Assembly (NCBI GenBank): GCA_973895155.1
Contig: OZ316899.1
Location: 4,715,241-4,779,240 of the forward strand
Length of the DNA stretch: 64,000 nucleotides
From: Marsupella aquatica
Taxonomy: Eukaryota; Plantae; Marchantiophyta
Direction of reading: 5' to 3'
Of the stretch, positions 5,406 through 64,000 are shown piece after piece. The notes under the pieces were generated by a model, which saw only the letters and a list, made by a program, of their open reading frames with translations, did not search any database and was not told where the DNA came from. Numbering within the stretch: the stretch's first letter is position 1; each line of letters begins with the position of its first letter. The position numbers and the translations under genes were made by a program.

Positions 5406-5960
5406 GTGGAGTCAGTGGACTCAAGGAGAAAGTTTGAGCCAAAGCAGATATTTTTTAAGCCAATTGGAGTAGCAAAATTACCCAATATTGCAAAGAAGGG
5501 ATCTTGGGAGTCAATTGTCTCCAAGTATGAGATGAAGTTTGAAAAGGGTCCTCCCCAAATCCCCTTGCGCCGGCTCATGCCAATGGAGGCCATGAGGAAT
5601 CTTCATGACAAGTCAATGACCAAACTAAAGAAAGGATTTAGAGAGAGCGGCTATGTTGTAAAGCTCAATGAGTTTCACATCACTAAGTTCAATGAAGTCA
5701 AGGAGACAAGGAGTTTAAGCCCTATTGGGACTTGTTGTGGACCACAATCAATGAGCAATTTGAGCAAGAGTGCAATGCGTCAGAGGACTTCAAAATCCTC
5801 AAGGACATGATGTTTTGGGTTTTTGATAGAAACCGTAGGTCACAACTTGGTATGTAGTTGTAGAGGAGTATCCAGATCAATCACAATACCATCTATGTGT
5901 CAAATTCTCTATTATAAATCACTGGTGCATATTAAGCTCATTTCCAACGCTCAATTTTTG
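5406..5960 (+). pseudogene. Decayed ParB/Srx-like domain gene, paralog of the gene at 58390-59150
   Basis: Across frameshifts it reads PPQIPLRRLMPMEAMRNL..MTKLKKGFRESGY, DMMFWVFDRNRR and TWYVVVEEYPDQSQYHLCV. These align by eye to PPRIPLCRLIHMEVVRML..IEKLKNSFRSSGY, DKMFSVFDGNHRL and SWTMVTKENPDNVKYHPRV. Confidence 0.75.
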
Positions 5961-14195: not shown

Positions 14196-14884
14196 CTTTA
14201 GCCACCTACCTAGGGAGTCACATTGCAATCATCCTAGGCTTGTATAGACAATGGCATGAGACCAAAGGGAAGAATGTGGCCACCTCGGCCCCAACAGATG
14301 CCACCCCCGCCCCCAAAAGTGCTATGCCAAACGCCCCGACCACCACGACTCGGGTAAATCCCAACCCCGCTGCGTCACAACCTACTCCCCCGCCCTCTGC
14401 TCTGTTCGGCACCATTGTGAACAATGGGCCACCCCCACCACCCCCTAGCGTTGAGCCTCCGCTGCCCTTGACGCAGCCACCCCTAATTCCACCACCACCC
14501 GAGGAACCCATTTCCTCCTTGGTGTGGACTATGGAGGATGGCGTCACCCCGACCATGGATGCACCTTTACCTGAGAGAATGGAGGACTACCAAGTAGCTC
14601 TTGGGACCTTGGCCCACAATTTGGTCTAGAAATTTAGTCAAGACCTATCCGAGGACTTAGCAATGTACATCGAGCAACAGGTTGCACATTACTTCCAACC
14701 ACCCTTCTTCATGTTAGATCACCACCCACAACTTGTAACCCGCTTGGAGGATGAACTTATGGCAAAAGGGAATGAGATCGGGGATCTCCAGATGACTGTG
14801 GAACGACTGGAGGAGGCAGCCACCGCTCGCCACAAGGAGTAGTCCGCATCTTTGAACAATGGGATGGACTAAATCAAGAGTTAC

Positions 14885-27275: not shown

Positions 27276-30200
27276 AGCCAGATTTCCGGCTTTTCACTTA
27301 CTGAATCGTCATTTTAACTTTTTGAGAGTTATGAAGAGGCATGTCTCTTCGACCCTGTGATCTCTCACTCGGTAGATTTTTACTATAAAATAGCTCTACC
27401 ACTAGTGTAGTTGATGGTTAAGTTATGCATTTTTGCCTTTTCCTTGCGTTAAACTAGTTGATCATGAATCTATGAGTTTGAGATCAGGTTTAACATTTGG
27501 AGAGACTTACCTCCTTCTTGTGTTTTTACCTATGATTATAAACACAGAAAGTAAAATTCCTTTTGTGCAAATCTTTTGAGTTGTAATGACAGATTCCTTG
27601 TTGGTGACTCATTGCAATCTCTTGAGTTCTTAGAGTTAACTCATTGAGCTTAAGCCTTATTGAAATTGATGGATTTTCTTTCATGTTGCGTAGTACCATC
27701 TAAATGTTGAAGTAGTCACTCTTTTAGATCTTGTTTGAGTACCACTTAGAAAGAAAAGACAAGACGTGTTGACGGCGCTTTAAAAGAGTACTCTAGTAAG
27801 CAGTTTAGATCTGAAAAGCAAACGTGGATTTGAATCCTTAAGTCTTTTCATTTTGACTTATGTCTAAGGAGCAACCTTGGTCAATTCCAGACTCCCTTAG
27901 CATACTTTAAGATATTTTCCCTTGTGTTTTTGTTAATCATTCCCTTTTCATTAATTTATGTTTACATGATGCTGAGTTATCATTGAAAACTTCTCACCGC
28001 TGTGGAGCGATCTTCAAAATACCTTAGTAAAGTAATCAAACTTGATTACTATATGTGGAAAACATCTTAAGTCTATTATTATTGTTTAAATCTATCAAAC
28101 CAACCCCATCTTGTTCTTTACGGGAACGAATACCGAGTTTGAAGACCATTAAGTGTGTTTTTGGTTCTTCATAGCAAACTACACAGCTTCTGCCCAAAAT
28201 TCTTGTGGTAAACCTGATTGGCTCAGCATACTCCGTGACCGCTCCAATAATGTTTGATTGAGCCTCTCAGCGACACCATTTTGCTACGGAGTATAAACTA
28301 TGGTGAGATGGCGAGTTATCCACTGTTCTGCACAATACTTTTCAAATTCTATTGAAGTGTACTCCTTGTCGTTGTCTGACCTCAGACTCTTCACCCTGGT
28401 ATCCAAATACTTAACCGTGTTTCTCGTCTGATTCTCCACTTGGGCCTTCCACTTTATAAAAATGGACAAGACATCAGACTTATGCGTCATGAAATAAATC
28501 CATATAAATCTTGAGTAATCGTTAATAAAGGATACATAGTACAATTTTCCAGAATGTGAGGGAGTTGGGGATGGTCCCCACACGTCACCCTGTATGTATT
28601 GAAGAACCGTTTTGGAACGATGAGTTCCAACACCAAAAGCACAACAATGCTTCTTTCCAAAAATGCAATGCTCACAGAAATCCAATTTACAAGACTGCAA
28701 ATAAAAAATGAGCTCATTCTTCCGCAAGATAGCCAAACCTTTCTCACTCATGTGGCCTAGCCGTGAATGCCACAGTTGAGTCATTTCCTTGTGAGACTTG
28801 GTTACATTGGCCTCTCCACATACTGTATTGCCCTGTAGCATATACAAATTCTTTTGTTTGCTCCCCTTCAAAATTACTGTCTCTCTCGCCATGACTTGAA
28901 GTTCACCATCAATTACTCGCCATTGATGACCATTTGTATCCAATACACCTAGTGAAATCAAATTCTTACGCATGCTAGATACAAACCTGACTTTGGACAC
29001 TGTGCGCACAATGCCATCAAACATTTGAATCTTTACAGACCCAATACCCTCAACTTGACAGGAGTGATCATTTCCCATCAGAACTGAACCGTTTGACACC
29101 GAATAAGAATTGAAATACTTGCGAATGTAACAAATGTGAAAGGAGCAAGCACAATCAAGAATCCACACATTGTTTGCTCTCCTAGATGATGTGCATAAGG
29201 GCATACTCCTGCTTCATAAAACATACTCATAATTGAGTAAATAAACTTTTCCATCAGCACTAGCCATATTGGCTGATGAAGATTCAACTGCCTTACCCTT
29301 ACAATCCCTCTTAACGTGACCAACCTTGTGACACTTCCAGCAGAATACTGGCTTACCAAGATTGGACAAATTAACAGCTAGGCTGTCAAATTCATCCAAG
29401 TGATCCTGAAGCTTGTTCCCCTCTTTGAGCCTAAGGCTCATCAAGAGAGATTTTTAGTACAATTGGTTTGATGCATCCTCTCGATAGTACTTCTCCCTTA
29501 GGGCTTTGAACAAAGATGCATAATCCGCGTAGTCATCCAACTTCTTGATGATATGCGGCTTTAGATAAAGCATCACCGCATTCACTATAATTACTTGTTC
29601 TTGCCTCCACCTCTTTAGTGGAATCTCCTCCTCATCATCGTACATCTCTTGTGTAGAGAGAAGGTGATCTAGGCCCATAGCATGAAGAACTCCTTTCACT
29701 TGCTTTTCTTAGATCAAGTAGTCTGTACGTCCATCATACTTTTCCACCTCAAACTTGACACCTTCAAACCTGGATGTCATCTCTTTTTCATTCACAACCC
29801 CCTCTACTTGCTACACCGGTGATCATACTAGTGTCACGCTTGCTTCCTCTTGCTCCTCTCTCTCCACCACAAAGATCTCCTCGTGGTGATCTTTGTGCTT
29901 CAAGCTCCACGTCTTCAAAAATCTCCTCCAAATCACTCATGTGAGAATGCAAGAAAAAATGATGTTTTCTCAACTTCTTCAAAAAACTCAAAACTTATCA
30001 CCGCCGTGTAGCCCATAGGCCTAGCTCTCCAACGCTGAAAACCAGAATAAAAACCGAACTCCGATGTAAAACTTTTTCACTTTTTGGTTGGGGTGGGTAA
30101 AACTTGGAATTCTCCCCCGTTTTGACCACCTTGGGGAATAAACAAAATGTGAACTAGTACCTGACGTCGGAAATGCAATTTGATTGGTGCACCACGTGGC

Positions 30201-41100: not shown

Positions 41101-44100
41101 TGAAGGCTTGTTTATTAGTTCTTCTATCCATTCACAATGGTGAAATCTGTGCTCTTTTCAAAATTAATGCTATTCCAAAGTTTGATGGGACATCATACCA
41201 TATCTGGAGGTCCCGGATGAATTTGTTTTTTTCTGTCCGCCCAAGGTTTAGTTGGTATTGTTGATGGAACAGTACCAAAACCTACAGCGCCTGCTGCAAC
41301 AGGAACGGTAGCATCCATGACTGGGTTACCAATGGTCCAATTGCATTATCGCAAATCCTCTCGCCAATTCGCAAGTGCATCACATCAGCTCAGCAACTAA
41401 TTCTGCTGAAGCCTGGACGAAGTTGGAAACTCTCTACCAAGTTCAAGATGGAGTAACCAAGATGTATCTCCAAGATGAGTTACAAACTCAAGATGGAAGA
41501 TGGGGAGAGCGTCCACCACTTCCACACTTTCATTGATCAACGCTTCTCAGCTGAAGTGACAACTACTAATTCAAGCCAATTTCTGGCACTGATGCGATCA
41601 ATGCCCAACAGTTATCGAAATCTGCTGATTTCTTTGCAAGGTCAAACTAACTAACTTATCACTCCAGAAAGTGACCACATATCTTCTCCAAGAGGAGCAG
41701 ATGATGAACACAGAGGCCATTGAACCATCAACAGCTCTTTTCGTTGCTCGAGGCGTTGAATCTCCACCGAACAAGACAACAACTGTACACCGTCGGAGGC
41801 AAGGTGGCTACACACAGCGAGGTTCTGGTCAAGGATGAAATCTTTCTAAAGGCGTAGGTCCTTTGAAACATAAAATTTCTTCCCAGTCCTTCCAACAGAG
41901 AAGAAACGTCTTCTACGACTGATTGGCAGTCTCCATCATCATCTAGTCATCAGGCCAATTACAAAAAGATGAAGTGCTTCTATTGTCAACTGCAAGGCCA
42001 TCACATTGATTGCCGCAAGAGAATCGCAGACCAAAAAAGCTGAGCAAAATGGTCTGACTTCTCAAGCAAACATCGCCTCTCAACTTGTGCTCGCAGTTGC
42101 ACATTCAGTTCCGAATCCTGCGATTCCCGATATTTCTTGATATCTGGACTCTGGAGCCAATCACCACATGTCTCATTTCGGTGAGTACTTTACGAACTGC
42201 GGTAGTTATAATGAGCTACAGGTCGTTTACGTTGGAGACAACTCCACTCAAATGATCCAGGGCTTGGCCAAGTCACTATCTTTCTTTTCGAAAAGCACCC
42301 AATATACAATCTCTAATCTCCTGCACTTTCCAGGGCAGTGTGTTTTGCACGATCCTCAAGGTGAAGTTATCACCACTAATTAACTGATAAAAGATTTAAA
42401 TAAATGGGTGAAACTATTTTTACCTTCACCAATTGTTGCTGCCAATATAAGTTTTCCCAACACTTCTGAAATCCGGCATAGTCATGTGGGACACATTAGT
42501 GCTGCCCGTATTTCTGAACTGCAATCAAAGAAAATGGCTGAAGATTTTCCTGATCACCTTCATTCTCATAATTCTTCCTGCACATCTCGTCTGTTTCGCA
42601 AATAGACTAGAAATCTCTTTTCCACCACCCCTGCTCATAGAGCCGTGGGCATATTGGATTAATTCACAGAAACATTTGTGATCCAATCTCCCCCGCCTGC
42701 TCACTCGGGTTTTCGATACATCATTCTCTTCATTGACCTTCACGTTCTACTACGGTTTATCTCTAATGAACAAGTCAGATGCTCTTCCACGAGTTTCTCG
42801 ATTTGTGACAAACGTGGAAACCCTGCATCAACCCCGTCGAATTAAGATGCTGCGTTCTGACAATGGTGGTGAATAGTGGTCATCAGCCTTCAACAAGGTT
42901 TGTATTTCTCGACAATTTACAGCACCACACACTCCGGAACAAAACGGGTTATCTGAACCCAGAACCGTACCCTCATTAGTTCTGTTCGCTCACTGTTGAC
43001 TCAATCAGCTCTTCCAACGACGTACTGGGGTGAAGCTCTTACAAAATAGATCGCCTAGCAAAGCGATGCCACCATCTAAAGCTGAATATGAATTGTGGTC
43101 CCTCACAAACTACCTTATCTCATCTTACTCCCGCTTTTGCAAAGATAACTGATATATCCTATTTTAAAGTTAGATTTTCGTTCTGAGGAATGCGTTTTTC
43201 TTGGCTACAGTGACCAAACTCGAGGTCTGTGTCTTGAAAGCAAAAGGGATAAAAAGATTTTACTTTCCCGAGATGTTGTTGTCTTTGAAGAACAGGTCGG
43301 CTCTGCTATTTCGGACTCTCCAACTGTTTCTTCTGAAGCTGAAGATCTAGCTCTCCGTTCAGACCCTAAAATTTTCCGATGCTCTCTTAATTCAATTCTC
43401 TCAGTTATCCCTCTCCTTCCTCATCTGCTCCATCCTCACTCGGAGCACCATGTTCGCTTGCTGCATCTCCCTCACCTAGTCATTCCTCTCAGGTGTCTCA
43501 TACCACACCATCTTCCAATTCCTCCCGGCCACCCTCACCTTCTTCCCCTGGTGATAGTCGAACTTTCCTTCACCATGAAAGGGGTTCAGAGGCAACCCCA
43601 CCACTTGTTCAGACAGACAAAGTGAAAAAATCACAAAAGAAGTTGAGCGTTACGATGCTGTCCATGAAGCTCAGAAGGAGAAACAGAAAAGGTGGACCTT
43701 ATTCACTTCATCCAGTGTATTTTCTGACCAATACCTATGAACGACCAACGACTGGACCAGATGCACATCACTGGAAGGCTGCCAATTCTGAAGAACTGCA
43801 GAATATGCCACCATGCAAGCTTGGACACTCGTTCCACTTCCTCCAAACAGAAGTATCGTCGGCTGTCGGTGGGTTTTCAACATTAAACCCACATATGATG
43901 GAAAAATACAAAGCTCGTCTAGTCGTCAAGGGTTTCACTCAAGTTCCCGACGTTGAATATGAGGAGAAGTTCAGTGAAACTACAATCCCTAGCCGTCGAC
44001 TTCTGATAGACTTAGCTGCTTGTTTCAATCCTGAACTCCATCAGATGGACGTGATTGCTGCTTTCCTATATGGGTTTCTCCAACAGCAATTTTTTATGGA

Positions 44101-47100
44101 CATCCCTAAAGGGCTCGAAGTCCCTGATGCTAATCTTGTCTGTCTTCTTGACAGCTCTATTTACGGTTTAAAACAGTCGGCCAGAATGTGTACCAAAGGT
44201 TCCACTACGCTCTTTTAAACACTGGTTTCACAAGCACTAGCGCTGACTCTAATATCTAAGTCTTACACAAAGAATTAGCTTTTCTTTTCCTCGCATTATA
44301 TATGTCGATCACACCATTCACTGGCAAGCAGTACAGTGAATTTTCCGCTACCTTAAGGGCACTCAACACTATTACTTGCAGTACAAACAATCAGATATTT
44401 TCTGATGCATCCTACGGCGACGACATCGACTCCTGGAAGTTTACCTGCAGATTTTGTTTTCTACTGGCATGGGGAGCAATCAGTTGGTCGAGCCGGAAAC
44501 AAAAGTCGGTGGTCCTTTCCAGCACCGAGTCAGAGTACATTGCAATGACGAAAGCCTGCACTGAGGCAATGTGGCTTCGACGTTTGATGTTAGTGATTGG
44601 CTTCGGCCAAAAGATCACGGAAAATGGTGTGACAATCCGACTGCTATTACTCTGGTTCATGCTTCCAACACTATGATCGACCTAGTCATATAGATATCCA
44701 GTATCATTTCATCAAGGATCAATTTCCAGTGGTGAGATCAAGATACTCTACATTCCGACCATAGATATGACTGCTGATATTTTTACTAAGGATCTACAAA
44801 ATGGACCTCACCAAAAGAATACAAGATCTCTAGGATTAACAACTTCCACTGATATAAATGATGACTTGTTAACATGAAAGTGAGTTTTTAGGGTTTAGGG
44901 TTCATAAACTAGTACACTTTAACTATTCATCCTGTTAGTCAGTGTGTTAGTTAGTCAATCCTAGTAGTGCTCACATGGATTGATACCCACTAGATTTACT
45001 TGATTCCTGTTGAATAGTTCTATCCCCTAGATCTATTTAGTGCGTCTGCATATTCTTATAGATATATATGAACTGACACACTTCTAGATTCACCTTCAGG
45101 TGATACAGAGAGAGGCACACCTGTTCAGCGTGACAATTAGCGTAGTCGTTCTCTCTACTCAAACTAGGAACATCGTATCGGCTTTACTGTTGTCAATCAA
45201 TCTATCTGACTTCAATCGCGCACAATCATTCTTTCTTTTGTATTAACAATTTCACAATACTAAACCACAGTTGCCCACGAAAGAGAATAGCAAATTTCTT
45301 CTTCTAAAAGGGCATCTTATTTCATGAACACGTGAAGTTCTTCAAAGCTGGAAAATTTATACCACACCCAAATTCGAACTATACCCAAATTTCCTAAATC
45401 TCAAAAACCTCCCGAGATAAACTCGCTTCTCACATGGCTTCAGATAAATTTCTCCACCCTTGTCTCACTGGACCCATCCTCCTCTTAGGGGTTGATAGCA
45501 TCATACCCCTTCACTTGCCTGTCATGGTGTATACTCTTCTAAGGCGCTTGGTACGATCATCAGTTGCCTATCATGGTGGATACTCCCTCGTTTCAACCCA
45601 CACACGACGCTCTCTATACTTCCACATAGTCCAACAACTAGTGGCCAAACCCGGAAGAACCAACCTAAAATGGGAGGCCATATGGTTACAATTCGACCCC
45701 AGCCAGTTATTGATCTCAACCAAAACTGCCACCTATGCTACTAAGTCTTATGACAATTGGTCTATTACTGGCTTTAGAAAGGCAATGCTTAAACATTCTC
45801 TCATATTGCAAAGTGGGTTTACCTTAACCTTCTGTCCAATGTAAAAAAGAACAACTAAGATTCTGTGAAGCTTCTACATTTTAATACAAGCCCAACAAAT
45901 TTAAGATTTTACTTCAAAATTTCAGGTCATGAATCCCAAGGGCTTTGCAAGTCAAGTATATTTTTGGAGCACAATATATCCATGGAACGTTATGCATTGA
46001 CTAACAAAGGTATGACCATGAATAATGGGACTTACCATGATTCGAATTGCCGAAGAGAAGTGAAAATTTCGGGTAGTATGAAATTAAGCAATGACCAAAG
46101 TTCTGAGAGGTTGTTTTGCAATGGAGTGCCAGTTAACAATAGTGAATTTTCAGTAGGAATCATCTTCAGCTCCCGGATAAGCTTGCAATCAGAATTCTTT
46201 AGTCTGTGGCCCTGTTCAACATGACAGTCTTCTATTTTAGCAGTCGTAAGGACCGTTTTCACAACCATGACATACGACGGGTAGGGAAAAACTGTAACCG
46301 TGAAGTACAATTTTAATATACCGAGATTTACCTCATCCACTATGACATATTTCCATTTTCGGCGACATAGATATCTCCGGTCATGAATGGCGACCTCATA
46401 TGATGTGACAATGATGGGAAAATCTGAAGATATTGTTGAGGGCATAGACCTTCTAATCTCTCCCCTTTCATACTTGCTGCCATGATAAAGGAGTACGGGT
46501 AACGTTGGAGCCCACCTGCAGTCACATTTTCGGTCATAGCATTCACAAGCATTGCATAAGCTTCACGTTGTAGTAAAATTCTTCATCCCAATTTGTGTAG
46601 GACACATTCGCCACATTTCGATCCATCACACCACAGGATGAATAGTTTTTGAGCTTGCGGTGAATTTCTCAACATGTAAAATCAGTCAGTATACAACTAG
46701 AAGCCAATTGAGAAGGGAACTGTTGCGCATCACTGTAATCAGACAGAATTCAAGCGACAACAAAAGCGTTCAGAGACAACCTTATAACCTCATCCACCCA
46801 ATTAGATAGTGTAGACAGCGGAGCACACACGAGGAAAGGGCCATACATGCCTTTCCCCTTAAGATGAGCAAGCAGTCCGATTGCTTGGATTGTCTTACCG
46901 AGACCCATCTGGTCCGCAAGAATTCCGTTTAGCCCATTTTGCCAGAGTGAAATAAGCCATTTTACACCCTTCAGCTGGTAAGATTTAAGTATACCACCTG
47001 TGAGAAAAGGTATGAGCTCCTTTTGCTCCCTAGATATGCTTTCGTTCTCAGTTGGAAAGTCTTCCCCACGTATACCAACATCTTCTTCATCATTGGAGAA

Positions 47101-49636: not shown

Positions 49637-52600
49637 TGTCACGTCGTCATCCTAGGCCTTAACCCAGGCTTTGGCTTAGACAGGCACATCCTTTATAAAT
49701 ATGAGGGTTCGGGCAGGGAGGGACGCACGAAATGCTCCTAATTCACGTAAACTAGCGCTAAGTGAGCTTACTGTTATGTACAGACACCTCCTAGGTATAG
49801 TTTGTGTTCCGCCGCCGGAACGTACTTTAGTCGACACGGGGTCGACCCCGGCTCACGGACTTCTAAGCCTTCGTGTTACCACCTTCGATCCGGATCCGTT
49901 AGTACAAGAGCTCAACCCGGGCTCGCAACCCCGTACCCGTATCCTGCACCCCGTGCACGGTTGGCATAACGTGTTCGGCCCGGCATTGATACTTGCACAC
50001 GAGACTCATACATGCATACATACATAACAGAAATCTCGATTACACGAAGGAATTTAAGGAGAAAGGATTTCATTCATTCATGATCATACACTTTACGATT
50101 GGTTGACCCGACACCTCGTGAACGACCGGGCCCAAGGCCAAGGAGTATACACTACAACGGAGCCCGGCTCCGCACTCGCCCAACGAGCTTAGTCGTATAC
50201 CCTCCCCTTGGTACTCCAGTACTTCACCGAGTTTGGGACTCCCCGTGCGTACTGCGAATGGCCAACTTCTGAGTCTAAAATCCCCCTCCCTAACCTCTAC
50301 TAGGGGGGCCGCTAAATACTAAGGGCTGAGGACCGGCCTGGCCTCGTGCCCGAATCTACGCTAACTTATATCCCTACTAAGCTGGTGCTTACTTGTCCTA
50401 TTAGTCTAACCTATTCTACACAGGCTGGCTAATGTGTCAGCGCCGCTATCTTCTGGCCGGCACTTGTCCTACCAGCCTGTTTTAGCTACTCCTAAGTCTA
50501 TTCTAAGCCTAATCCTCCGCTAATGTCTGGTGCGCTTGCCAGAGCCGTCCAAGTGGGAGCGGCCATCCCGCTGCCTATGGAGTCTGTCGTTGTCCGCCTT
50601 GAGGAGCTGGACTTGGTCCAGAGAGATTTGTTTTCTCGCTTCACCGCGTCCGTCTCCTCAACTGCCTCCTGGCATGCCTCTTCCAGTTGTTGGGCGTTGC
50701 TCGTCAGCTTGTCCACCACCTGGGTCTGTTTCCCGGCTTCGGCTTGAAGCCGTGCCACTTCGGCCTGTAGGGTGGCAATCTTCGCAGTGTCACGCTGGGC
50801 CCGCTCTTCGGCCTCCTCTAGGTCTTTCTGCTAGATGATAGTTTGGTTTTTCAAACTGTCAACCTGGGTCCGGAGCCGTGCAATCTCGGCCTCCTTCCCG
50901 GCTTTAGCTTGTTCGGACAAGGCGGTAAGGGCATGCGCATTTGCTAACAACTCATTGGCGGTTGCAACCTTGGGTTGTAGTTGCAGAAGCTCAACCTCTT
51001 GAGCTGCAACTTCATCCTTTAGGTACACGGATTCAACCCGATACCGCTCTATCCGCTGAAGGGCCTCCGACTGAGCCCGACCTGCTTTTACTGTGGTAAC
51101 CAACTCCTAATTGAAGAAGTAGGCTACCTTTCGAGCCATGAACTCCCCGGTATCCCGGGCTATCTGTTGGGAGAAATCTCCCAAAAGCCCATTTAGAAAT
51201 GTACTCGGTACGAAGAGTTCCGGGTGGTCCAGGTTATGCTCGTCTGGAGTTGGGCACGGGCAGACGTTAACTCGCGTGGGAGTCGGGGTAGTGATATCCA
51301 GCCCTGGGGATGTAGTGTTGGAAGGGGCTGGAGTGTCCTCCTCCACCATCGGGCCGTCCTCTAGAATAGCCACTGGTGGGTCTTCTGGACCTTCGGGCTC
51401 GGGCAAGGCCTCCACCGCCCCAACTTTTGCACCAGGCCCCGCCTGGTTCATTGCGGCTAAGGTTGCAATCACTGCCTCTTCCGGTACTTCTTCGGCCACG
51501 GCTACCGCTACCTGTGGAGGTTGGATGGGTGAGGCCTGCATCGCCGCCGGACTTCAGGCCTTGGGCTGAGACCGTCTCTCCAAGGCCGGGAAGATCCACT
51601 TAGTCGGGACCAACTTAGTTACGTTGACTCGGGGAAGGGTTTGTCGATCAAACCGGGCGTACCGCTCAAGAATGATCTCGATGTGGCTGGCAAAATATGC
51701 CTTCCTGCCAATGTATAGCGACTTCCGTTGTCACTCCATCTCTTCATGGAACTTCTTAGCAAAGTACAAAGCCCACTTCCTGGGTCGATAGTTCTTGACC
51801 TGGATAACCTGGGCAGCGGAGATCTCACCCTGGGGTTCCATCATGTGGAGGGCGTACCTTTGGAACTCCAGCCGCTCAGCTATCTCGGGGATGAGGCAGG
51901 TCCTCATCACAAACCCGTTGTCCACTGACCCCTCGGAGGGAAAACTCGAGGATTGGTATTTGGCTCCCTTGCCCCCGGGAGCCCGTGATTTGACTCGGTG
52001 ATCGCCCTTGAGTAGCCCAAAGATCATCCTGAGCCGTTCCTCTATGAGGGACATATTCCTCCCCCGCAGCCGAGTATGCTGACGGACGTCATCATAATTC
52101 TTGACGAACTCCGTCATGTCCTCCCCGTAGTATCTGCAGGTGTTCCAGGGGAGAGAGGCGAGGTGCTCGAACCCCTGAGTCTTCAAGTACATCGCATGTT
52201 TGGGGTGGAGGATGTTCTTATGCACGTTTTCCCCCATACGGTGCATTGCTACCTTGGTCGCGGCTACCGTGGCCATGGGTAGCCCGGATATAGCTGCAGG
52301 TTCCTTCCTCTTCCTTCCTCGAGACTGGCTCGGGGAGGGTGACACCTCCCCATCCTCTAGATCGGGTGTAGGTAGTGCCACCGCCGTTAGTATTGGGGCC
52401 GGGGCGGTTATGGTCACCGTGTTGTCTGTTGGAGCCGCTACTCTGGTCCGGGCCTGGGGAAGGGGCGATGTAGTGCTGGCTCCCTGGGTACTTACTCCTC
52501 TAGGCCACCTGAGCAGGGGTAAGGTAGCCTCTTTGTCGTCGCTGAGGTCCACAGCGTTGATGACGGATCTCACCTGTAGGGGCGGGGGTTGGCTAAACTG

Positions 52601-52977
52601 AGGCGGAGCCTGAGCCTGAGCTGGTGTTGGTGCAGGCACGGCTGGGCTGGCACCGTGGTCGATGGTGTGGTTGTCATGAAATTCTGTAGGTGCCGGTAGA
52701 GGTTTTCTAACGCAAGTGTAGGCGCCCTTGTAGATCGGGTAGCGCTGGACTTGTTGTTGATGATTTCTCGGACCCGAGTGGGGATGTGGTCAAAGTGGTG
52801 CCGCCGCTGTAAGTCGATCATGCCCGGGATATTGAAGACCTCGTCTGGGAGCCAAAGCAATGCCTCCCAGAAGCCGATATATTTGCCTCCGTCGAAGAAG
52901 TACCCTGATATTTCTTTGAGTCGGTAAAGCTCGCTCTGGGACGGGTAATCAAAGTTAAGGAGATAGTGATGGCGGCC
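49637..52977 (-). mobile_element. Accessory-ORF element copy C' with LTR-like end; truncated by the Mutator-like element
   Basis: ORF pieces 50498-52860 are colinear with copy C (HPKHAMYLKTQGFEHLASLPW, FMARKVAYFF). The terminus TGTCACG at 49637 shares blocks with the solo LTR. Confidence 0.75.
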
Positions 52978-53877
52978 GGGGTATTTACATAAGACAAGAA
53001 ATAGGAAAACAGGAAACCCAAAACAGGAAACGATGACAGGAAACAGGAAACCGAATATAGAAAACTTCAGCGAAGAATGCCCAAAAATTTTCTGGTGTGA
53101 ACAAAGAACTTGACATTCAAAACAGGACGTTTAGAAGATTCAAGTCGAATGCACAAAAAATGGTCAAGAATAGCGCCAGGCGCTCGTTTAATAAGCTTAT
53201 GGGAACTGTACATTTAAAACCATTTTGACCGCTATCCGTTAGCGAATAGCAAATCCGTCCCAAAGAACAAAAACTCGTGTACAAGAAGATATCGAAGAAC
53301 GTGCAGCGTGTCGGTTGGGCAAGTGATCACACTAGTGCCTAGCGCTAGTCCTTTTGGTTGTGGAAGAACCGTTGTCGTCCTTGATGCCAGCCTTAGATGT
53401 GGTTGTGTTGGGAGTAAAACCGTTCTCACCATAAATGCCAAGGATGGCATTCTCCTCACACCTCTTCGGCAGAGGCGGGTAACAACGAACCAAATCCAAC
53501 CAATTTGCACATCTGACGCCAATCCACAATCCACGAAGTCTTGTGATAGAAAATTAATTTACTAATATGGTAGCGCCAGGCGCTTACACAAGTTCAAAAT
53601 GATCTGAGGTGTCCACCCCGTAAACCGAAGGATCGCAAAATTCAAAAAGCAATGTGCATTGCACATCCTATGCCTATCGCTTGATACTACCAAGATGGTA
53701 AACTAGCGTCACTTGTCAGATCTATAGACAAGCGATGACAAAAATGGCTAAGACATGTATCAAATAATCTATAAGAGATAGATCAAATAAGCTGTAGCTA
53801 TACGCAAGACACACCCTAAACTGAACTCATCAACACATTTTGCACACTACGCAATGTCCATTGTGAAGGTGACCACA

Positions 53878-54354
53878 CTAGCGCCGGGCGCTAGTCCGCT
53901 CATTCGTAGATGAGCGACAATTGTCGTCGATTCCAGCTGCAAATCGGACTGAATCCGGAACGAACCCATGCTCTTGGGTCCTGATGTAAGAGGCAGATGG
54001 ACTTCGCTCGTCACCGCTTTGGGGAAACACGCCAGGAACGGTGGTACTATGGAAATCTACACGGCCAAGTTCTTCCTGTTTCCTCATTTCATCCTCCCGA
54101 GTTGGACTATGGGGAGGAGGTGGCCAGTGAACAGAAAACCTTTCCGCAAACCTCCTTGGCGGAGAATCCCTCAGCCACGGGATCAGCATTTCACCAGGAC
54201 TAATCGCTTCATCTTGCGGAAGGTTGAAGCGGTTGCGGAAGGCACTTGTTTCTGACCATTCGAGCTGTTCAGTCACGGCAACCAAACTCTCTTCCAAAAT
54301 GATCGTAGTGTGTCTTTAAAAGTAGGTTGCAGAGATTCTCCGGGGATTATCCAT
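53878..54354 (-). pseudogene. Small unknown ORF of the MULE-like element (one in-frame stop)
   Basis: ATG at 54354 gives MDNPRRISATYF*RHTTIILEESL..., in frame with ORF 53878-54297. Its C-terminus resembles that of ORF 53332-53529. Confidence 0.35.
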
Positions 54355-54952
54355 GGCAGGTCAGCGGAAGATCTCGAACACAATCGAAAGTGGAAAGCAC
54401 TATAAGATGATAATGGCGGATCACACTGAGAACTGATGCAATACAGGGCATTCAGGACTTAATCGCTCAAAGTTTATAGGGATTAGGGTGTAACCTCGTG
54501 GCGACCTTAACCGCCCACTCCATCCGGAAACGGTGGTAGCACCCTCAAACTCCCGTTATGGTCTAAAAAGGAAACGGTCGATTCAACATGAAACGGGCGT
54601 TTTCACCACACATGACCATCGCGGCAGACCAGACAAAATATTAACGAGAAATTTGACTGACGTCATCCAGAAGGTACGGGAGTACCAATTACCAGCGTCA
54701 TGGCCGTTATACAATTATAGTAGCGCCGGGCGCTACTATTATAATAGAAAGTGTACTTCGAGCGGACAATCCATGTTTACAACTGACATATAATATCTTT
54801 ATTGTACAGTATTTCTGGCATACATTTGGGTAGCGCCCGGCGCTAGCATAGTTGCACTAAAAAATACACCCAAATTAACAATAGAGATCCAAGTTAATCT
54901 GAGCACTCCGATTCACTGGATTCGGACCTGTCGGTAGATTCTGCCTCAATGT

Positions 54953-57900
54953 CTAAAAATTCACTCTTGGCCATACATCCACAAATCGGTTCCGCATAAA
55001 TTTTCTATCAGACCCCCTCCTTAATCTCAAGCCTTTATTCTCCCAGTGCAGGGTACACACACTGTCAACTTTTTTAGCAACATTTTTAGCATAGGAAGGT
55101 AAGACAAATGGTTTCTCGGGAGTTTCAATATATCGCCTAGCTACTTTCCGTCTGAGTTGGAAACGCCGACAAAGATTCCAGTCTGACCTGAGGAGGAGAA
55201 TATTGGATTTGATGTCAACGGCCGAAATATTTGCAAAAAAGGAAATAAAAAAATGTGACATCAAAGAGAGAAGAAGGGAATCGACCGTAATAAAAAACCG
55301 GGTTAGCTTATGAGCTTACTTGGTAGTTTCTTACTCAGAAGAGTCTCCGCTGTCACTCCCTCCATTAGATTCCGGATCTTCTCCGGGTAAAGACACTCTG
55401 GGAATGTTCGGATCCTCCTCTTCTTCTTCCCCCTCTTCTGCTTCATTCTCATATTCGGAGTCAAAATTTAATACTGATTTAAGTTTGTCTCTCTTTCGTT
55501 TTGCAAACACAGGCTTTGGAGGGGCTTTGGACTCAGATACTTTGGGAGTTAGAAGGTCAAGAAATATTTTTGAAGCGGTTTCAATGAACTCCTTCCTATT
55601 CTCGAGCCCAATTACAAATCGACCATAATTATCACCTGCCACAAATGTACTCCCAGAACCTACAGCCCAATCCAGAATAATATCTCCGGGACACATGATT
55701 AGTTCCAGAACAGACTGCATAAACCCTGGATGTAGTCTGGCATTCCCGGCAAATTCAAGCTCTGGAGTTGTATCCACCTTCGCAAACGAAAGTCCGATCA
55801 GATTTGTGATAGAGGGATCCTCTGTTCTTGAAAGAGGTTTGAACTTAGGATCCTTGGGGACTTTCACCTTGGATGATACCCGACAAAATATATCTAAACG
55901 TAAAGTGAATACCTGAAAATGGAACATGAACAAGTAAGGACCAAAGAATTGTAATAGCGTCGGGCGCTAGCAAAGAATTAATAGTATATTTAGTAGTGTA
56001 CCTAGGAAAAGATTAAAATTTATAATCGAGCACTACATAAAATGAGCAGCGCCTGGCGCTAGCAAAACTTTGAAAGTGTGATGAATAGATTTACCTGCAA
56101 ATCAGACTTGGCCTTGTACATGGGGAACCCCATGACAACATTATGTGTACACAAACATTGGAATTTCTTAGACTCTTGACATGCTGAGATGACCTGTGAA
56201 ATCTGATCATACTCCCCCGTATGGAGTATCGCAATAATATCGTCATCCGACAAAAAGGGATCCATTGCCTGGAAAAAACACCAAGCTAGCATACAGTCGG
56301 GAACGTTCCATTTAGGGACCTTCCTATCAAGCAAAGTTGGTTTAAGTCCAGTTGGCAAATAAATAAAACCAGTGTCAACACCAAAAGGCCTCTCTTTCCC
56401 ACCCCTCACCACCCCTTTCAGTCGGCATCCCGATTTGATTAAGTCCTTCCCCCACTTTTTGGCATCATTAACCCATTCTGGCTTCTCCTCCTTGTTAAAC
56501 ACATTGTCCACTAATTCACTGACACTGGTCTCAACGAAACAATGACAAGATGACTTGGATTTAAAATTCCCAACATCACGTTGGAGCCTAGTGGCCGCCA
56601 GAGAATCCCTTTCTGATTGCCCAGCATTGCGAGTCCTCCTGCTTTTCTTCTTTGTACTCGTTGCACTGACTGGTACAATTGATTTTTCCATAATTAAGTG
56701 GTGTGAGTGGATCTGGCAAAGCGCCAGTATTTGCTTTTGAAGCTTCCGGGGTAACCTTCGTATCATCAGTGGCGTCTGCATCCGACTTCTTTTGACCTAT
56801 TCACACGTTGCAGAGAATGAGGGATAAGTGTCAGAAAGAAAAAAAATGGATTAAGGTTGAAGTACAGGAATAGTAGCGCCAGGCGCTAGCAAAGAACTAA
56901 ATTGGGTTTGAATGGAAACGTATGTGTCTTCCCGGATCGCGTTGATGCACTTGGCAGTGTTGTGTCTACTTTCACTTTCCCTCTCGGCTTGCGGCTCCTG
57001 TCTACATGGACAACTACTGTCTCGCAGATTGTTTGTAACTCAGTAGATGATTTGTCGACGTTGCTCAGGAGCCCTTGCTTCATCTCAGAAACTATGTTGG
57101 GTAGAATCACTTTCCTAAATCATAAGGCAACTTGGCTAATTTAAGAAACCAATCCTTCTCCACTTTGTCAAATGGTGAATCCCACTTGTCTGTGTCAAGA
57201 TACCACGGGCAGTGAATTCTTTCCCACTCAGACATTTCCCGTGGTGGAAGTTTACCCTCAGTAGGATACATCGAATACAAGTCAGCAACATGATCTCCCT
57301 CCTTTGCAACAATCCACTTGTGAAATGCGACTGGATACGCCCAAAGCGCATCCGGGAATGTACTTCCATCCATATGTAAAAACGATACAAATACCTCTTG
57401 GCCCTCTTCTGATTTTTCTCTGTATATACCTCTTTATCAGGGTATTTTGATGGCCACATGGTGTTGAAGAACTTTGCCTTCACAAGATCCCCATACCTTC
57501 TGAACTCACTTGAAATAATTTCAATCATACCCTCTACTGAGTCACACCCTGAATGGGAAAGCCTATCAACTGGGAGTGTTTCAATGGCTGCGGAAATTGC
57601 AGACTGCAACATCCCAATTGCGATTCCCTCGACGGTATTCCAGGGTGACACCACTGCTTCACTGGATCATCATTCACACTGGCAGGGTGGAAGAATTGTT
57701 TTCTCAACTCTGGAGTACAGTGAGCAACAAGCAAAGTGCATCTCAATTTTGGATCGAGAGCAGAAACGATTGTGAATAGTCTAGCACGGTCCATAGTACA
57801 AACAACCGAATCGGGATTTTTCTCTCGCTTGTTCTTCTCCGTCAATATGTACATCTCTGCACAAGTACCTAGAAAATCTTCAAACTCAAGACTAAGAAGA

Positions 57901-59150
57901 GGAGTGATTTTGGATGTTTTCGTAGACCAGTCTTTGGTGGCCTCTTTCAACATGAGTGACTGTCGCTTTGCAACCTCATCAGCCGACCAAGGATTGCCTT
58001 GACTTGCTGCCAATGCCATATCCATCTTGAACTGGTTAGTGTAAGCTTTGATTTTGTTTTCGCACAAAATATAAACAAGAGCTTCCAGAGGCATTTTCCA
58101 TGTGTACCAAGAATGTTTTCGAGTCTTCTGTTTGATATACTCAAACTTTGCATAATTGGCGCTGTCAATTATTGACTTATAGTACTCTAGATCGTGAGAG
58201 AGAATCCTTCGGATTCTGTCTGCGTCAAGGATCCAAGACGGTTCAACAACAGCCTGCCCTAACCTGCAATAGGCCATGTTTGAAATTAGTAGCGCCAGGC
58301 GCTAGCATAAAAAACACTCTCTTTAGTATTTATTTAACAGCAATGGATTGCGGAAATTTTTAATTACAAGTTTGTGCCAAATTACTTACTGGTTGACAGT
58401 GTGCATAGCCGCCTCAATCTGAATTTGCGAAGCTTTATCACCCTTGAAAATGGTGCAGAGAACTCTGGGATGATACTTGACATTGTCTGGATTTTCCTTT
58501 GTGACCATAGTCCACGAGTAAAGTCGATGATTCCCATCAAACACTGAGAACATTTTGTCTTTCAAGATCGTAAAAGTTGGATCTGCCGCGCATTCTAACT
58601 CAAATTTCTCGTTCTCAGCAACCCAAATAGCATCCCAAGTCTCCTTGATCTCCTCAGTGCATATTTGCTCCACACCATCGGAATCGGTCAGTTGTACAAA
58701 AAACCGCATTCCAATCCTTGGATTGTAGCCACTACTTCGGAACGAGTTTTTCAATTTCTCAATGGACGCACTCTCCTTCTGAAGCATCCGCACTACCTCC
58801 ATGTGGATCAACCGACAAAGCGGAATCCTGGGCGGTTCCTTCTTGTTTCCCCGGAAATCTTTTCCAAATGACATTATGTGTCGCGAGATGACTTCTTCCA
58901 TCCCTAATCCAACCTCGTTGCCCTCTCCCAGCGCGTAATCGGTCATGCTATCCGTGTCCATTCGGACCCTTCTGGACTTCTGGTGTGGTAGTGTTGCGTT
59001 GATGGAAGTGATTGCTCCGCTTGACCTTGTAACTCGATGCGAGTAAAATGCCCCAGAGAACGAAGATTGTGTAGACTCGCAATGACCGTGATCTTCCTCT
59101 GGAACTGTGGTATACCCTCTTGGAGAGCTTGGGGCGATTGAAGGTTGCAT
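54953..59150 (-). pseudogene. Multi-exon ParB/Srx-like domain + beta-class N6-adenine/N4-cytosine DNA methyltransferase-fold gene (frameshifted)
   Basis: Exon 59150-58390 has RIPLCRL..SIEKLKNSFRSSGY..FSVFDGNHRL. GT-AG introns: 58389-58264 (phase-consistent), ~56920-56797, 56094-55913 and 55334-55188 (phase-consistent). The C-terminal exon reads LHPGFMQSVLELIMCPGDIILDWAVGSGSTFVAGDNYGRFVIGLENRKEFIETA, matching the N6_N4_Mtase SAM-binding motif pattern. There are several frameshifts in 56700-57700. Confidence 0.75.
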
Positions 59151-60045
59151 TGTGGAGCATGTCAATATGTGAAGGTCTCTGTACGACACAGAGCCAGTCT
59201 CTACCCTCACGCTCCAAACAAATTACCGTACACAAAGAACAACAAAAAACCTTTAAAACTTTTCCATCATAGTGCTGTTGACATCATGTGACGGAGAACG
59301 AGAAGGATTGAAAGAATCTCACTGACCAATCCAAACAAAGACAGGTGGCAGGGACTGTTTGAAATGAGTAGAATTAACGTCTACTTTCAAGTCATTTGTG
59401 GATGCAGCGATGAACGGGAGTGTATCGTTAAACAATCCAACAGAAAACAACACAAAGTAAGGAATTTGTTCATACATGTTACCATTAGATGTAACCGTTG
59501 GGCAAACCAAAGTCATCTCCATCGATACTAGCGCCCGGCGCTAGTATCAACAAACACTAAAAATACTCTCATACATGACGATGACAGGGAGGAGATTATG
59601 TCAGCGTCGGGCGCTAGCTATGTATACCCCTTGTATTTTCCCAAGAAGTACCGATTCCAAAACAATATAAAACGTTTATTGATTTTTTCAGCAATTCCAT
59701 CAAAATCAATAAAATATTTCTCTTTGACTTGACAGTCCGCCAATGATAGCGCCTGGCGCTAGCACGTTAAGTCTGGTTTCTAAGTTGAAACCCGAGTACT
59801 TCTTTATGGTAGCGCCGGGCGCTAATAATTATTTGATCGCATTTTTTGCACTTTACCGGTAAGTAGTGTCGTTGGCAAAACGACAAACTACATTTATGTG
59901 TCTGCACCTAACGACTAGTACCCGTTTTGTCGTTTACAAACGATAATCTTATGAGGTTTGGAATGAGTTTACTTAACTTAAGTCGAGTAATGTTCTCCTA
60001 TTTCCTCAGATCCTTTGTTTATCAAATTAATATCATTCTCCCGCA
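59151..60045. promoter_or_regulatory. Divergent promoter region between the cargo gene and the transposase
   Basis: ~0.9-kb AT-rich spacer between head-to-head starts. It contains 4 palindrome copies, including the extended GATACTAGCGCCCGGCGCTAGTATC (59524-59548). Confidence 0.5.
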
Positions 60046-63000
60046 ATGTCTAATTCAGTCGTGCTTCTTCATCCTGATACTGGGGAGATTGTAAGCATCC
60101 CTTTAGGTTCATCCGACACGTACAAACAGGTTAGTGAGAACTATCTTTGTGGAAGATTTGACGTTGCCATCAACGACATCCATTCCATCAAACCAGACCA
60201 TGCATCTGGAGAGGAGACAGATGACGCACTATTTGATATCGATGATGGAGTCAGGTTTTGGCACCTCAACGCTGGAAAGAGATACATTATCAATCTCCAA
60301 CAACATTCCGTTCTGAATGAAAGACATCCAGTTCCATTCATTGACCTTTCCGAGAGTGAAGAGGAGGAGGTAGCTGTAGATTTGCAGACATCCGTTAATC
60401 CAGGGCCTTCTATCAAGATAGAAGGTCACTCTCCTTCCGAGCCAAATGTTTTGGGGGGTGTTGTGTACCATCGAAGCGCAATGGATGCCATTCTCAAATT
60501 AACTGGCCATAGTGAACTGTCGCTGTTCATCCGAACAAGTGATTTCAGGCATGAGCAGGTGAATTGTCTGCCAAGTAAATACAATGGAAATGTTGTGTTT
60601 GAATTGCCTCCCGCAGAAGGTCTGCTATCAAAAGGTTCGAGGCTCCGTGACATGGACAGGCCTAAAGACTGCTACTTCTGGACACGAATATTTCCAACTT
60701 CTGCGAATGTCCAACCTAATTTTTTTGGGGAATTTGATAAAGTGACGTGTACGGGTGCACTCGAATGTCAAAATCAGAAATGTGATTATCTGCTACGGAA
60801 GAGAAGAGGAAATTCAAAAGCTTGGGATGGGACACCCAAACTTGCGGGGCCACATACCGTGGGAAAGATTATTGAGGAGGGTGGAGTAGTTTGTCACTAC
60901 TGCCAACAATTGCCCTTTTGTATTGAAGCTTGTTCAACAATGCTTTTTTATATGTACCCGCAATTACTTCTCGACGCGGATACATGTAAACATATGTCGC
61001 GTCTTCCTGTGCATGTCGGAACTCATGCGCATCCCAGTCGTAAAGTTTTTTCTTGAGGTGCGGAAAAGATTGCTCATGAGTTCATAAAGAAGCAACATGA
61101 AGCTACACCGTCTACCACACCATCGGGTATGAAGAATGTCGTAACTGGATCTTTAAGGAAGGCTCTCTGTGTGTCCAACAATGACATCGGAGAATTGGAG
61201 GAAAGAGAAATTTGGGAGTCGTTAATGGTTGTTTCGACCCCTCAAAAGTTTGCATCTCTTTTTTGGAGTGTTCGGCAAGACCAAAAAGGTAAAGGTGAGT
61301 TAGAGTTTCTTGTGGAAATGCAGAAATGCATAAACTTTCCATTTCTACAACGTTATATGCTGCCAGGTCAAGGCTGTAAGGAGGAGTGACCGCATATTTT
61401 CAAAACAACGGTAAAAGGGCACGGATCTGGAGTTGATTTGTTGGGCCAAATGCAACCTGGAGGTCGACTAGAAGGCGCGTGGGTTAGTTTTGATGTGATG
61501 AGGAGAATGACCAAGGATTGGATAACTTTTAGCACTCACGTTTATGATCACAATTACCGTGCTCTTTGCACAATCTTCACATGTGAGTTGAAAGCTGAAG
61601 ATTTTGAGTCGTTAGAAAAAGCCTGGAAATTGATGATTGAGGTTTGCCATGAAAATGGGTTAGACAACGTAGTAATCCATGGATTCATGGCTGACAATGC
61701 TCAAGCTGGATGGAATGTTGTTCGGAACGTGTTTTTTGGTGGACATCCTAACCCGGAAAAGGAGCTATCGGATGCGTTTCACTTCTATCAATCGTTTCAT
61801 CGTCATTCAATTGAAGGAGTATTGGAAGAAAAACGAGAAGAGCACCGGAAGATGTGGGACTCTTTAAGGAACGCGTCAACATTTCTTGGAGCCTACAGAA
61901 TTTCCAGGGAAATCGACATGTGGTGGAGATCAGGGAATTGTGTTTCAGGAAAGCTTCGGATGCTCCAAGGTTGGCTTGCATGGTGGGTGGTCCGATGGCG
62001 TCAATGGGGAAATTTCATTCGTTTGGTGAGTTTCAACATCCATAAACAAGTAAACACACGAATCAACATTTTAAAAGAAGGAATCAAACAAAGTCATACT
62101 AGCGCTTGGCGCTATCATTATTTCCAGTGACTTCCGTGTCCTAGTTCCACTCCAATATTTGCTCGAGTTTTGATACTAGCGCCCGACGCTAGTTTTATGA
62201 ACCACTTGTTACTCGTATTTGTCCATATTCTAGTGTGAATGGTGGTAGCGCCAGGCGCTGGCATTGATTAAACCCGAAAATCTAACCAAATAATTTGGTT
62301 CAAATGTTTCTTTATTGAATGCAGTGACTAAGCCATATTTCCTAAACTGTGCTCCAAATGTTTTATGCAGAACAAAAGCATAGAGGAAAGCGCTATGATT
62401 CCTAACTGTACTACTTCACAGGCGGCACATTCCATAATGAAGGCTTGGCAAACTAAGAAAAAGGCTGGTCTATTTGAAGCATGTGAGATGGATCAAAATA
62501 GGGCTCTGTCACAAGTTGCTGCGTATACGGCGTATAAGAGAGGTCTTAACCGAGGAACCAGACCTACAATTTGGGAATTGGCTTTCCGTTCGGCAGACCA
62601 GGCAGGTTCTTCAAAACTTTTCCAAGATGCTTCCAATATGCTTCTTTCCGGTGCGGCTGAATTCGACCTGGAAAGGAGTGGCCCTCTCAATGGGGATGTT
62701 ACCACAAAGTCTATGAAGAGGAAAGGTAAGCCTCTGGGAACATCTCGGCACAAGACTCCCATCAGCATGACACTATTCTTGTAACATCACCATATACTCG
62801 AGGCATGAAAAGGAAAAACTTAAACAAGACTGAATTCTCCCCCGTTGCATCGGGTCCTGTTCACCATGACATTGGCGTTGTGGACCTGTCAGAAAGTGAA
62901 ATTGAAGAAGGCAGACATTGGAGTACTCCGCCCTGGAGGAGGTCAACAAGGTCGTCTGCAGCCTCCCAACCTCCCAACCTCCAAAAGGTCTGCACCTCCC

Positions 63001-63904
63001 AACCTCCAAAGGTTGTCCATGACTCAACTGTGTTGGAGACAGATGTGCGACCAGGGGCGTGGCACCTACAAAGAGTGACGAGACATGGTGCAGGGCCTCA
63101 GTGTAATGGATCTCTTGGTGGAAAATTGGATCGAGATGACTGTTGCAATCATCTTAAAAAGGTTGTTTACCCGTCAACGGATGGTGTAGTTGGCATTGTT
63201 GTCAAAGAATATCGCGTGTTCAGGGGAGAACCACACCCTGAGATGATTTGGTTTTGTCCCAATAGTGCATGCTATAAGAGCCGGCCCCGTCGTAATGTGG
63301 TGAATCTTCCCCCATTTCCTCATAGCCTGCCCGTTTTGAAAGGAACTAATCTTTCCGAGGCTGAGGTCCAATTCTTGACTCAACAAGGGATTGCTATCAA
63401 TCTAGAGGCCGGATGTCAGGCTGCTCCATCTCCTTTTGACTTGCGAATCAATGTGAACCTTTTCCCGGAGAAAATCAATCTCCTTGAGCCAAATATCCGC
63501 CTTCGGAGCAGGAATGGTAATAATACAATCCCACGTTCAAATCTTTCGCAAGGGCACAACAAAAGAATTGAATCCGCAAACAAGGAGTCGATGACCCTCG
63601 TTCAACAATTTGATGTTTCTGTTGGGAACTCTTGGGGCAAACAATTTCAGATCCAAACCCAAGAGAGACTTCGCACGGCAAACACTTATTGGTACAGATT
63701 TGCATTTTCCCATGTTGTTCTTGTGAGGACTTCTATCGTCGCCATTCTCATGGTAGGCCCTTCATGCCGTGCAAGCATCTCTATTAGGTGTATACCAACG
63801 TCCTAAAACTAGATGTGGTGGATTCAACTTTGGCTAGTCAGCCAATTCTGACTGTAGGTGAGGTGAGGCTCATTCTAGCTAGGCAGAATTCTTTGGACTT
63901 ATAG
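60046..63904 (+). pseudogene. MULE (Mutator) DDE transposase with N-terminal GCM/WRKY-like Zn domain and C-terminal SWIM finger
   Basis: ORFs 60046, 61129 and 61438 are one reading frame broken by TGA stops. Motifs: CTGALECQNQKC..CHYC..C..HVGTHAHP (GCM-like); WVSFDV..GFMADNA..DAFH (MULE D, D, CxxH); intron 62026-62370; CCSCEDF..PCKHLY (SWIM, shifted frame ~63710-63785); stop at 63904. Confidence 0.85.
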
Positions 63905-64000
63905 ACTAGACATTTAGTAACGTTCAACGGCTCCAAACTGATTTGTCGCATTGGAACGTTTCAATCTTTTCAATGATACCTAATCAAATACTCATTTTCT

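Follow-up and report, generated by a model that had tools for sequence, protein, structure and literature searches.

A decayed Mutator-like transposon in the liverwort Marsupella aquatica with a ParB-like/methylase-like accessory gene and its own set of palindromes

Genes and palindromes of the element

The stretch of DNA analysed here, called the window throughout, comprises 64,000 nucleotides of the liverwort Marsupella aquatica (GenBank assembly GCA_973895155.1, contig OZ316899.1, positions 4,715,241 to 4,779,240 of the forward strand) and harbours, from about position 52978 to its end, a transposon that is predicted to be Mutator-like. The element possesses a transposase gene that runs from 60046 on the forward strand, in a reading frame spanning 60037-62025, and an accessory (cargo) gene with five exons on the reverse strand, arranged head to head, together with an array of short palindromes (Table 1). 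An earlier note on this DNA had described such a divergent pair with a spliced cargo gene. The arrangement was found as described, splicing is indicated by homology and canonical GT-AG sites, and both genes are pseudogenes in the window copy.

The exon map of the cargo gene was built by homology to a metagenome contig, L001, and to full-length proteins of the same family that are present in Riccia sorocarpa (P0163, 1207 aa). The queries of all searches were single exons, sequences taken by reference or proteins from databases. The encoded accessory protein would have about 1000 aa, in the order disordered N-terminus, ParB/Srx-fold domain, helical region, methylase-like domain and C-terminal motif. 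Cargo exon 2 contains three frameshifts, at ~57645, ~57368 and ~57110; since three frame changes are needed where L001 has one open reading frame (ORF) of 506 aa, the cargo gene of the window is a pseudogene. In the transposase gene, in-frame stops were found at 61054-61056 and 61387-61389, both of which intact homologues read through, as well as frameshifts in exon 2 at ~62728 and ~63690. The position of the third catalytic glutamate (62410-62445) is mutated, the related locus L003 having ES-x-NS there. To judge from these lesions the window copy is dead, both genes being pseudogenes from which neither protein can be made.

Contigs from public runs that cover 54900-60800 number in the hundreds at 90-99% likeness, in two organisms, and carry 1-nt indels at 55247, 55292, 55648, 57353 and 59051 and breaks at 57645. 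The element therefore belongs to a multi-copy family, with many diverged copies that have lesions of their own.

The palindrome is the 15-mer TAGCGCC-N-GGCGCTA (TAGCGCCNGGCGCTA), of which seventeen copies with up to 3 mismatches were found between 53171 and 62260 and zero in the rest of the 64-kb window, in agreement with the earlier claim that seventeen palindromes are confined to this element. Its 13-nt core, AGCGCCNGGCGCT, is present in 16 copies at ≤1 mismatch, against 0.03 expected. A scan for repeated palindromes (arm 6, spacer 0-4, at least 4 copies) detected this one as the sole such family within the 64 kb. All seventeen copies (17/17) are non-coding and lie outside the exons supported by homology, with P = 1.6e-8 given that ~65% of the element is coding. 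The differences in degenerate copies are mostly CpG-to-TpG or CpG-to-CpA.

Two cargo introns show a particular placement. In introns 2 and 3 (56888-56874 and 56061-56047, reverse strand) the palindrome abuts the putative 5' splice site, and the two share a flank, GTTCTTTGC or GTTTTGC followed by TAGCGCC; intron 3 has one palindrome close to either end. This placement could reflect duplication or a link with splicing.

Table 1. Features of the element, with positions in the window
Feature	Position	Strand	Description
Left non-coding arm	52978..55024		GC drop, D8/D11 repeats, palindromes; no Pfam or homologue match
Cargo exon 5, small	55025..55189	-	conserved C-terminal motif (PF-x-LP-x-YA...); tblastn with L001 ORF 5933-6289, 40%, E 2e-8
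Cargo exon 4	55334..55933	-	C-terminal half of methylase-like domain, then acidic tail
Cargo exon 3	56062..56796	-	N-terminal half of methylase-like domain; tblastn with L001 4384-5463, E 3e-16
Cargo exon 2, large	56889..58261	-	helical middle region; RAKR-x-YRF...SMY...CPWW block conserved
Cargo exon 1	58389..59120	-	disordered N-terminus and ParB/Srx-fold domain (58910-58389)
Divergent spacer	59121..60036		~0.9 kb, four palindromes; same layout in L007 and Riccia L011
Transposase exon 1	60037..62025	+	Cys/His-rich N-terminal region (~60748-61035) and catalytic core
Transposase intron	62026..62370	+	GTGAGT...CAG, three palindromes; exon boundary conserved in homologues
Transposase exon 2	62371..63901	+	tblastn with 490-aa L003 ORF, three frames, E 7e-105
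Palindromes, left arm (n=6)	53171, 53333, 53571, 53879, 54721, 54831		
Palindromes, cargo introns (n=4)	58290, 56874, 56047, 55955		
Palindromes, divergent spacer (n=4)	59529, 59602, 59747, 59810		
Palindromes, transposase intron (n=3)	62100, 62177, 62246		

The left end of the element, near 52978, is marked by two features alone, a composition break, where GC content falls from ~0.56 to ~0.44 near 52950-53000, and AACAGGAAAC-type short repeats at 53007-53065 in the left arm. The right end lies past position 64000, the window stopping ~100 nt after the transposase gene. Within the window, which stops at 64000, nothing matched the left arm in inverted orientation.

Next to the left edge of the element is a GC-rich block (49700-52960, GC 0.56) with ORFs on the reverse strand and no Pfam match, which may be interrupted host sequence or another repeat. 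The element is located in a repeat-rich region, with Copia-type fragments (RVT_2, rve, gag_pre-integrase) at 22345-23238 (-), 28284-29204 (-) and 43493-44218 (+). A lone ParB-like exon fragment, which shares 33-47% identity with the proteins of Riccia and L001, is present at 5493-5839 (+); neither transposase nor methylase sequence lies close by, and the TAGCGCC-N-GGCGCTA palindromes are absent there.

Transposase and domains of the accessory protein

The first gene would encode a DDE transposase of the MULE (Mutator-like element) type, Cys/His-rich at its N-terminus and SWIM-like at its C-terminus. Its catalytic core has aspartates at 61492 and 61693 and D-x2-H at 61771-61782, and the spacing D...D...(D-x2-H)...E is visible in the sequence, as is the SWIM-like CxC...CxH of the C-terminus (63713-63778). 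The transposase of the related locus L007 is 40% identical to window exon 1 (E 2e-109). A homologue from Calypogeia fissa, P0175, is 45-49% identical to the window transposase exon; the clusters that best match its features in the Atlas are all MULE (0.94, 175 shared features), and its predicted structure matches MULE, FAR1 and ZSWIM clusters with TM scores of 0.52-0.60. GCM was unmatched in Pfam and NCBIfam searches of single exons. The earlier designation as a MULE transposase is thus borne out by the fold and feature neighbours of P0175 and not by the Pfam MULE, SWIM and GCM profiles. We accept the name Mutator-like as a predicted assignment made from the transposase, the right end of the element lying beyond the window.

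Cargo exon 1 contains a DGNHRL motif (58538-58521, reverse strand) that the earlier note had attributed to a ParB/Srx-type domain. The exon belongs to a family with 496 representatives (50% clustering, E ≤ 1e-3), in which DGNHRL is invariant and the exon ends are shared. Among the listed matches of the element's proteins, those with a source name belong to the liverworts Riccia and Calypogeia and to a single fern, Adiantum. An AlphaFold model made from 46 sequences reached a predicted local distance difference test score (pLDDT) >90 over aa 101-274. Its comparison with 48,161 chains by VIA-align gave 12 with Z ≥ 2, and 12/12 belong to the ParB/Srx superfamily: KorB (Z 7.4, root-mean-square deviation 2.6 Å over 92 residues), PadC (7.1), the sulfiredoxin Srx (6.2) and pNOB8 ParB-N (5.9), then the serine kinase SerK, Atu1540, SbnI, SspE, Spo0J, BrxU and Osa. 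Foldseek searches of PDB and BFVD also ranked ParB/Srx proteins at the top, with weak E-values of 3e-3 to 0.04, and one of the BFVD matches to the model is a 479-aa protein of a phage that is itself named 'DNA methylase'. The model therefore supports a ParB/Srx fold for the N-terminal part of the cargo protein, and the earlier attribution stands on structure (Foldseek, VIA-align) and not on the ParBc sequence profile.

The only sequence-profile matches of this domain were weak, to TIGR03187 DGQHR (E 0.053) and, in 2/46 members, to Pfam DndB (E 0.066). PDB sequence and profile searches with the ParB-like exon and P0163 returned chance matches only, and neither the related-locus search nor tblastn against phages detected bacterial or viral relatives of the domain. 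A CTP box of the GERRxRA type was not found in the cargo protein, which has DGNHR in its place. A place among the canonical parS-binding ParB proteins is not supported, given DGNHR instead of the CTP box and no helix-turn-helix (HTH) detected after the domain.

Two further observations concern relatives of this domain. DUF3723 is a conserved accessory gene of the fungal Starship giant transposons. In the language-model features of the Atlas, the clusters closest to residues 165-325 of P0163 are those of DUF3723 (0.95, 181-183 shared features), and a ParB_N cluster follows at 0.92; Pfam DUF3723 matches 0/46 family members, and no literature linking DUF3723 to ParB was found. In the fern Adiantum capillus-veneris, protein P0121 (1176 aa) possesses the same ParB-like domain, which matches the family profile with E 2e-20, and, at its C-terminus, a NIF/FCP1-type phosphatase domain (Pfam E 2e-12), with no detectable methylase.

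The helical region that follows (~450-480 aa) was modelled at moderate quality (pLDDT ~80-88 for aa 10-230). Foldseek and VIA-align found no specific match for it, the best being generic helices at Z ≤ 5.6.

The C-terminal part of the accessory protein was assigned to the methylases by Pfam, tblastn and hhalign. Exon 55933-55334 matches Pfam N6_N4_Mtase (PF01555) with 31.4 bits, above the curated cut-off (26.7), at profile positions 170-220 of 221, a match that spans motifs X, I and II; NCBIfam gave CcrM-type matches for the same exon. A tblastn search with it retrieved 250 phage and 15 plasmid methylases, and the alignment by hhalign of the Riccia domain profile with two phage enzymes reached 93% probability (E 3e-7, 199 columns). 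The prokaryote-type, beta-class methylase domain proposed in the earlier note, which may be called prokaryote/phage-type, is supported by these results. Motif I, D-x3-G-x-G-x-T, is kept, and is represented in the window by DWAVGSGST at 55672-55646.

Motif IV is different. It is degenerate in the window (YLPTG, 56361-56341), and hhalign places the family motif on DIPY/DLPY of the phage enzymes. The family reads (D/S/Y)(L/M)P(T/S/N), namely DLPTG, DLPSG, DMPSG or DMPTG in Riccia, YLPTG in the window and SLPNN in L001. The catalytic form (D/N/S)-P-P-(Y/F/W) was found in none of the 8 members checked, the aromatic residue being absent from all of them. Methylation is doubtful because of this absence.

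The earlier note had considered the cargo a source of plant writers of N4-methylcytosine and N6-methyladenine (4mC/6mA), and in the corresponding explanation the protein would be an active DNA amino-methyltransferase that marks its own element by writing 6mA/4mC at the palindromes. A full-length beta-class fold with motif I intact, the motif IV aspartate retained in the Riccia members, and the description of algal counterparts as predicted N4C/N6A methylases (PMC12477816) all speak for such an enzyme. Nevertheless, the aromatic residue that the aligned phage enzymes have in D(I/L)PY is missing in 8/8 members, and the aspartate too is lost in the window and in L001, and we regard this explanation as improbable. 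Conventional methylation, including 6mA/4mC writing, by the accessory protein is unlikely on these motifs, and the domain is probably inactive in the liverwort branch; it may still bind S-adenosylmethionine and DNA. Given the probable loss of catalysis, a binding role is favoured over a writing role.

Related elements and the reader of the palindromes

Head-to-head pairs of the same kind were found at other loci. In L007, from a run assembly, the transposase and the ParB-like exon lie head to head, with a spacer that contains GCCAGCGT-A-ACGCTGGC. L003, which derives from the same sample, has this palindrome too, located after its transposase gene. On a chromosome of Riccia sorocarpa (L011, CM100801.1) the gene of the 1207-aa P0163 and a transposase homologue are placed head to head. 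The spacer of L011 (8509-9354) harbours nine copies of CCGGCGA-N3-TCGCCGG, and its arms (4015-4254 and 14353-15147) carry CCAGCGG-N3-CCGCTGG in regular arrays of ~68-83 bp; when the arms were compared with each other, the palindromes themselves were the only matches. L011 thus has two palindromes that are related but distinct, a hint that the sites have two roles or are recognised by two or more readers. L001 and L002 possess TTAACGG-NN-CCGTTA, present in 15 copies in L001, which are spread over a terminal tandem array (75 bp), the region upstream of the gene, and introns. L008 has CGGCGA-N3-TCGCCG. The earlier note had treated cargo, transposase and palindrome as a unit, a linkage now seen again in the pairs of L007 and L011; its parallel with VANC, the anti-silencing protein of VANDAL elements, is strengthened by the finding that each lineage has its own palindrome. 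A small gene for a RING finger (zf-C3HC4_3) was also found beside the cargo or transposase gene in L001 (925-1329, +) and L003 (2574-2936, -), and tblastn detected no counterpart in the window.

The conservation of the head-to-head pair, with a private palindrome in each lineage, indicates a sequence reader encoded by the element. It is very unlikely that the palindromes lack a dedicated reader and are hairpin or CpG-rich sequences spread by internal duplication, or signals for splicing or transcription. The shared flank directly after the 5' splice sites of introns 2 and 3 would be compatible with duplication, and the palindromes increase the CpG content of the non-coding parts of the element, where the ratio of observed to expected CpG is 0.98 versus 0.54 in the rest of the window. 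However, five related lineages have different palindromes of one design (arms of 7-8 nt, a spacer of 1-3 nt, a CpG per arm) in the same kinds of places, and this design would not be preserved by drift or duplication alone.

On balance we favour the explanation that the window holds a decayed copy of a multi-copy, liverwort-type transposon of the Mutator superfamily, whose palindromes serve as docking sites for a dimeric reader encoded by the element, likely the accessory protein. Building on the architecture, folds, linkage and lineage-specific palindromes observed, we infer the identity of this reader and its effect. The accessory protein is the strongest candidate for this role, and recognition might lie in the target-recognition part of the methylase-like domain or in the helical region. 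It would find the element's own copies and alter their chromatin or expression state, much as VANC does and as has been proposed for the ParB-type accessory proteins of algae.

Several observations weigh against this explanation. The N-terminal ParB/Srx domain of canonical ParB acts as a CTP gate and does not read parS, and the structure comparison of the helical region detected neither an HTH nor another DNA-binding fold after that domain. ParBc was unmatched in the sequence searches with hidden Markov models (Pfam and NCBIfam, with 46 members in Pfam), and the Pfam profiles MULE, Transposase_mut and SWIM were unmatched, even at E ≤ 1, by the window exons, 14 homologues and the L003 ORF. Neither end of the window copy is defined, and the long terminal inverted repeats and 8-11-bp target-site duplications typical of Mutator elements play no part in its assignment. 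Four public runs, given as contigs of unspecified library type, provided no usable RNA evidence; their joints are non-canonical or anchored on the repeated palindrome, and for these reasons no conclusion on RNA was drawn. Finally, L011 has palindrome arrays in both arms, the usual place of subterminal repeats bound by a transposase, and so the transposase could itself be the reader.

Such subterminal repeats are usual in cut-and-paste elements, and it is possible, though we are inclined to doubt it, that the palindromes are bound by the Cys/His-rich N-terminal domain of the transposase during transpososome assembly, while the accessory protein is otherwise engaged, for instance in nucleoside triphosphate-dependent clamping of DNA or in counter-defence. 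The tandem array with which L001 starts and the six copies in the left arm of the window would suit this explanation as well. In the window and L001, however, introns and the divergent spacer hold the same site as well, at a great distance from any end, and in L011 the palindrome of the spacer differs from that of the arms.

The preferred explanation, with the accessory protein as docked reader, can be extended only tentatively. The protein might combine a catalytically silent, methylase-derived reader with a nucleotide-dependent ParB/Srx module, sit as a dimer on the CpG-containing palindromes and block silencing by the host. Protein and palindrome would then diversify together as a private code of each lineage, and bryophytes and ferns would have an anti-silencing system independent of VANC; a kinship with DUF3723 would enter this picture by language-model features only.

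Known accessory genes and significance

VANC is neither ParB- nor methylase-like, and its motifs are not palindromes. The VANDAL elements of Arabidopsis and the liverwort element are nonetheless alike in being Mutator-like and in possessing an accessory protein and family-specific motifs in their own non-coding DNA. The resemblance is best taken as functional analogy only.

KorB of plasmid RK2, whose structure scored highest against the N-terminal domain of the cargo protein, uses short palindromic operators that are scattered over its replicon. Unlike KorB, ParB and Noc, the cargo protein has DGNHR for the GERRxRA box, no detected HTH and no match to ParBc. Phage and plasmid PF01555 enzymes, including phage ParB-methylase fusions, share the fold and the motif order of its C-terminal domain, whereas the cargo has lost the catalytic aromatic residue and possesses introns and a helical insert of ~450 aa between the domains. 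The nearest plasmid matches are stand-alone enzymes of 214 aa.

The earlier note had proposed a new system, which does not hold, as ParB-like/methylase accessory genes have already been described in algae (PMC12477816; 10.1101/2025.02.11.637652). The Sola1 element of Ectocarpus (2025) encodes, opposite its transposase, a protein of 1104 aa with ParB-like and N4/N6 methylase parts (PMC12477816), and that article also cites ParB-like and methylase accessory genes for green and red algal transposons. Similar to Sola1, the liverwort family has one protein of ~1100 aa with ParB-like and prokaryote-type methylase domains on the strand opposite the transposase, an architecture present in the window, L007 and Riccia L011, and for Sola1, too, a self-directed role has been proposed, in which the protein binds the element that encodes it and modifies it. 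Compared by description only, the two differ in that the algal element belongs to the Sola1 superfamily of a brown alga, with no element-wide palindrome set described there, and in that the liverwort family is missing the aromatic residue of motif IV.

In the red alga Bostrychia, Plavaka elements carry PAG3, a ParB joined to a 2-oxoglutarate (2OG) oxygenase, adjacent to inverted-repeat arrays, and PAG2, an N6-methylase joined to SET; PAG2/PAG3 also occur in Mutator elements of Chondrus, and the comparison with VANDAL is drawn in the same preprint (10.1101/2025.02.11.637652). PAG3 resembles the liverwort case in having a ParB-type protein beside inverted-repeat arrays that differ among families, in the hypothesis of self-binding and in moving between superfamilies. 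In contrast, the red-algal ParB and methylase belong to two different proteins, where they are joined to other partners, and the tandem arrays lie beside one gene, whereas the liverwort palindromes are distributed over introns, spacer and arms.

No papers on such accessory genes in liverworts or other land plants were found. The liverwort gene, borne by a Mutator-like element of a land plant, joins a class of transposon accessory genes that has come to notice only recently. With it, the range of ParB-like/methylase accessory genes, so far mentioned for algae (brown, red and green), widens to include land plants and Mutator elements.

The window copy itself is an inert fossil, cut by the end of the window. 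To our knowledge, the self-recognition of DNA transposons and their escape from silencing are understood in molecular detail only for VANDAL/VANC. The liverwort family would offer a second system open to direct testing, with recognisable folds, palindromes that change from lineage to lineage, and intact relatives in the sequenced Riccia sorocarpa.

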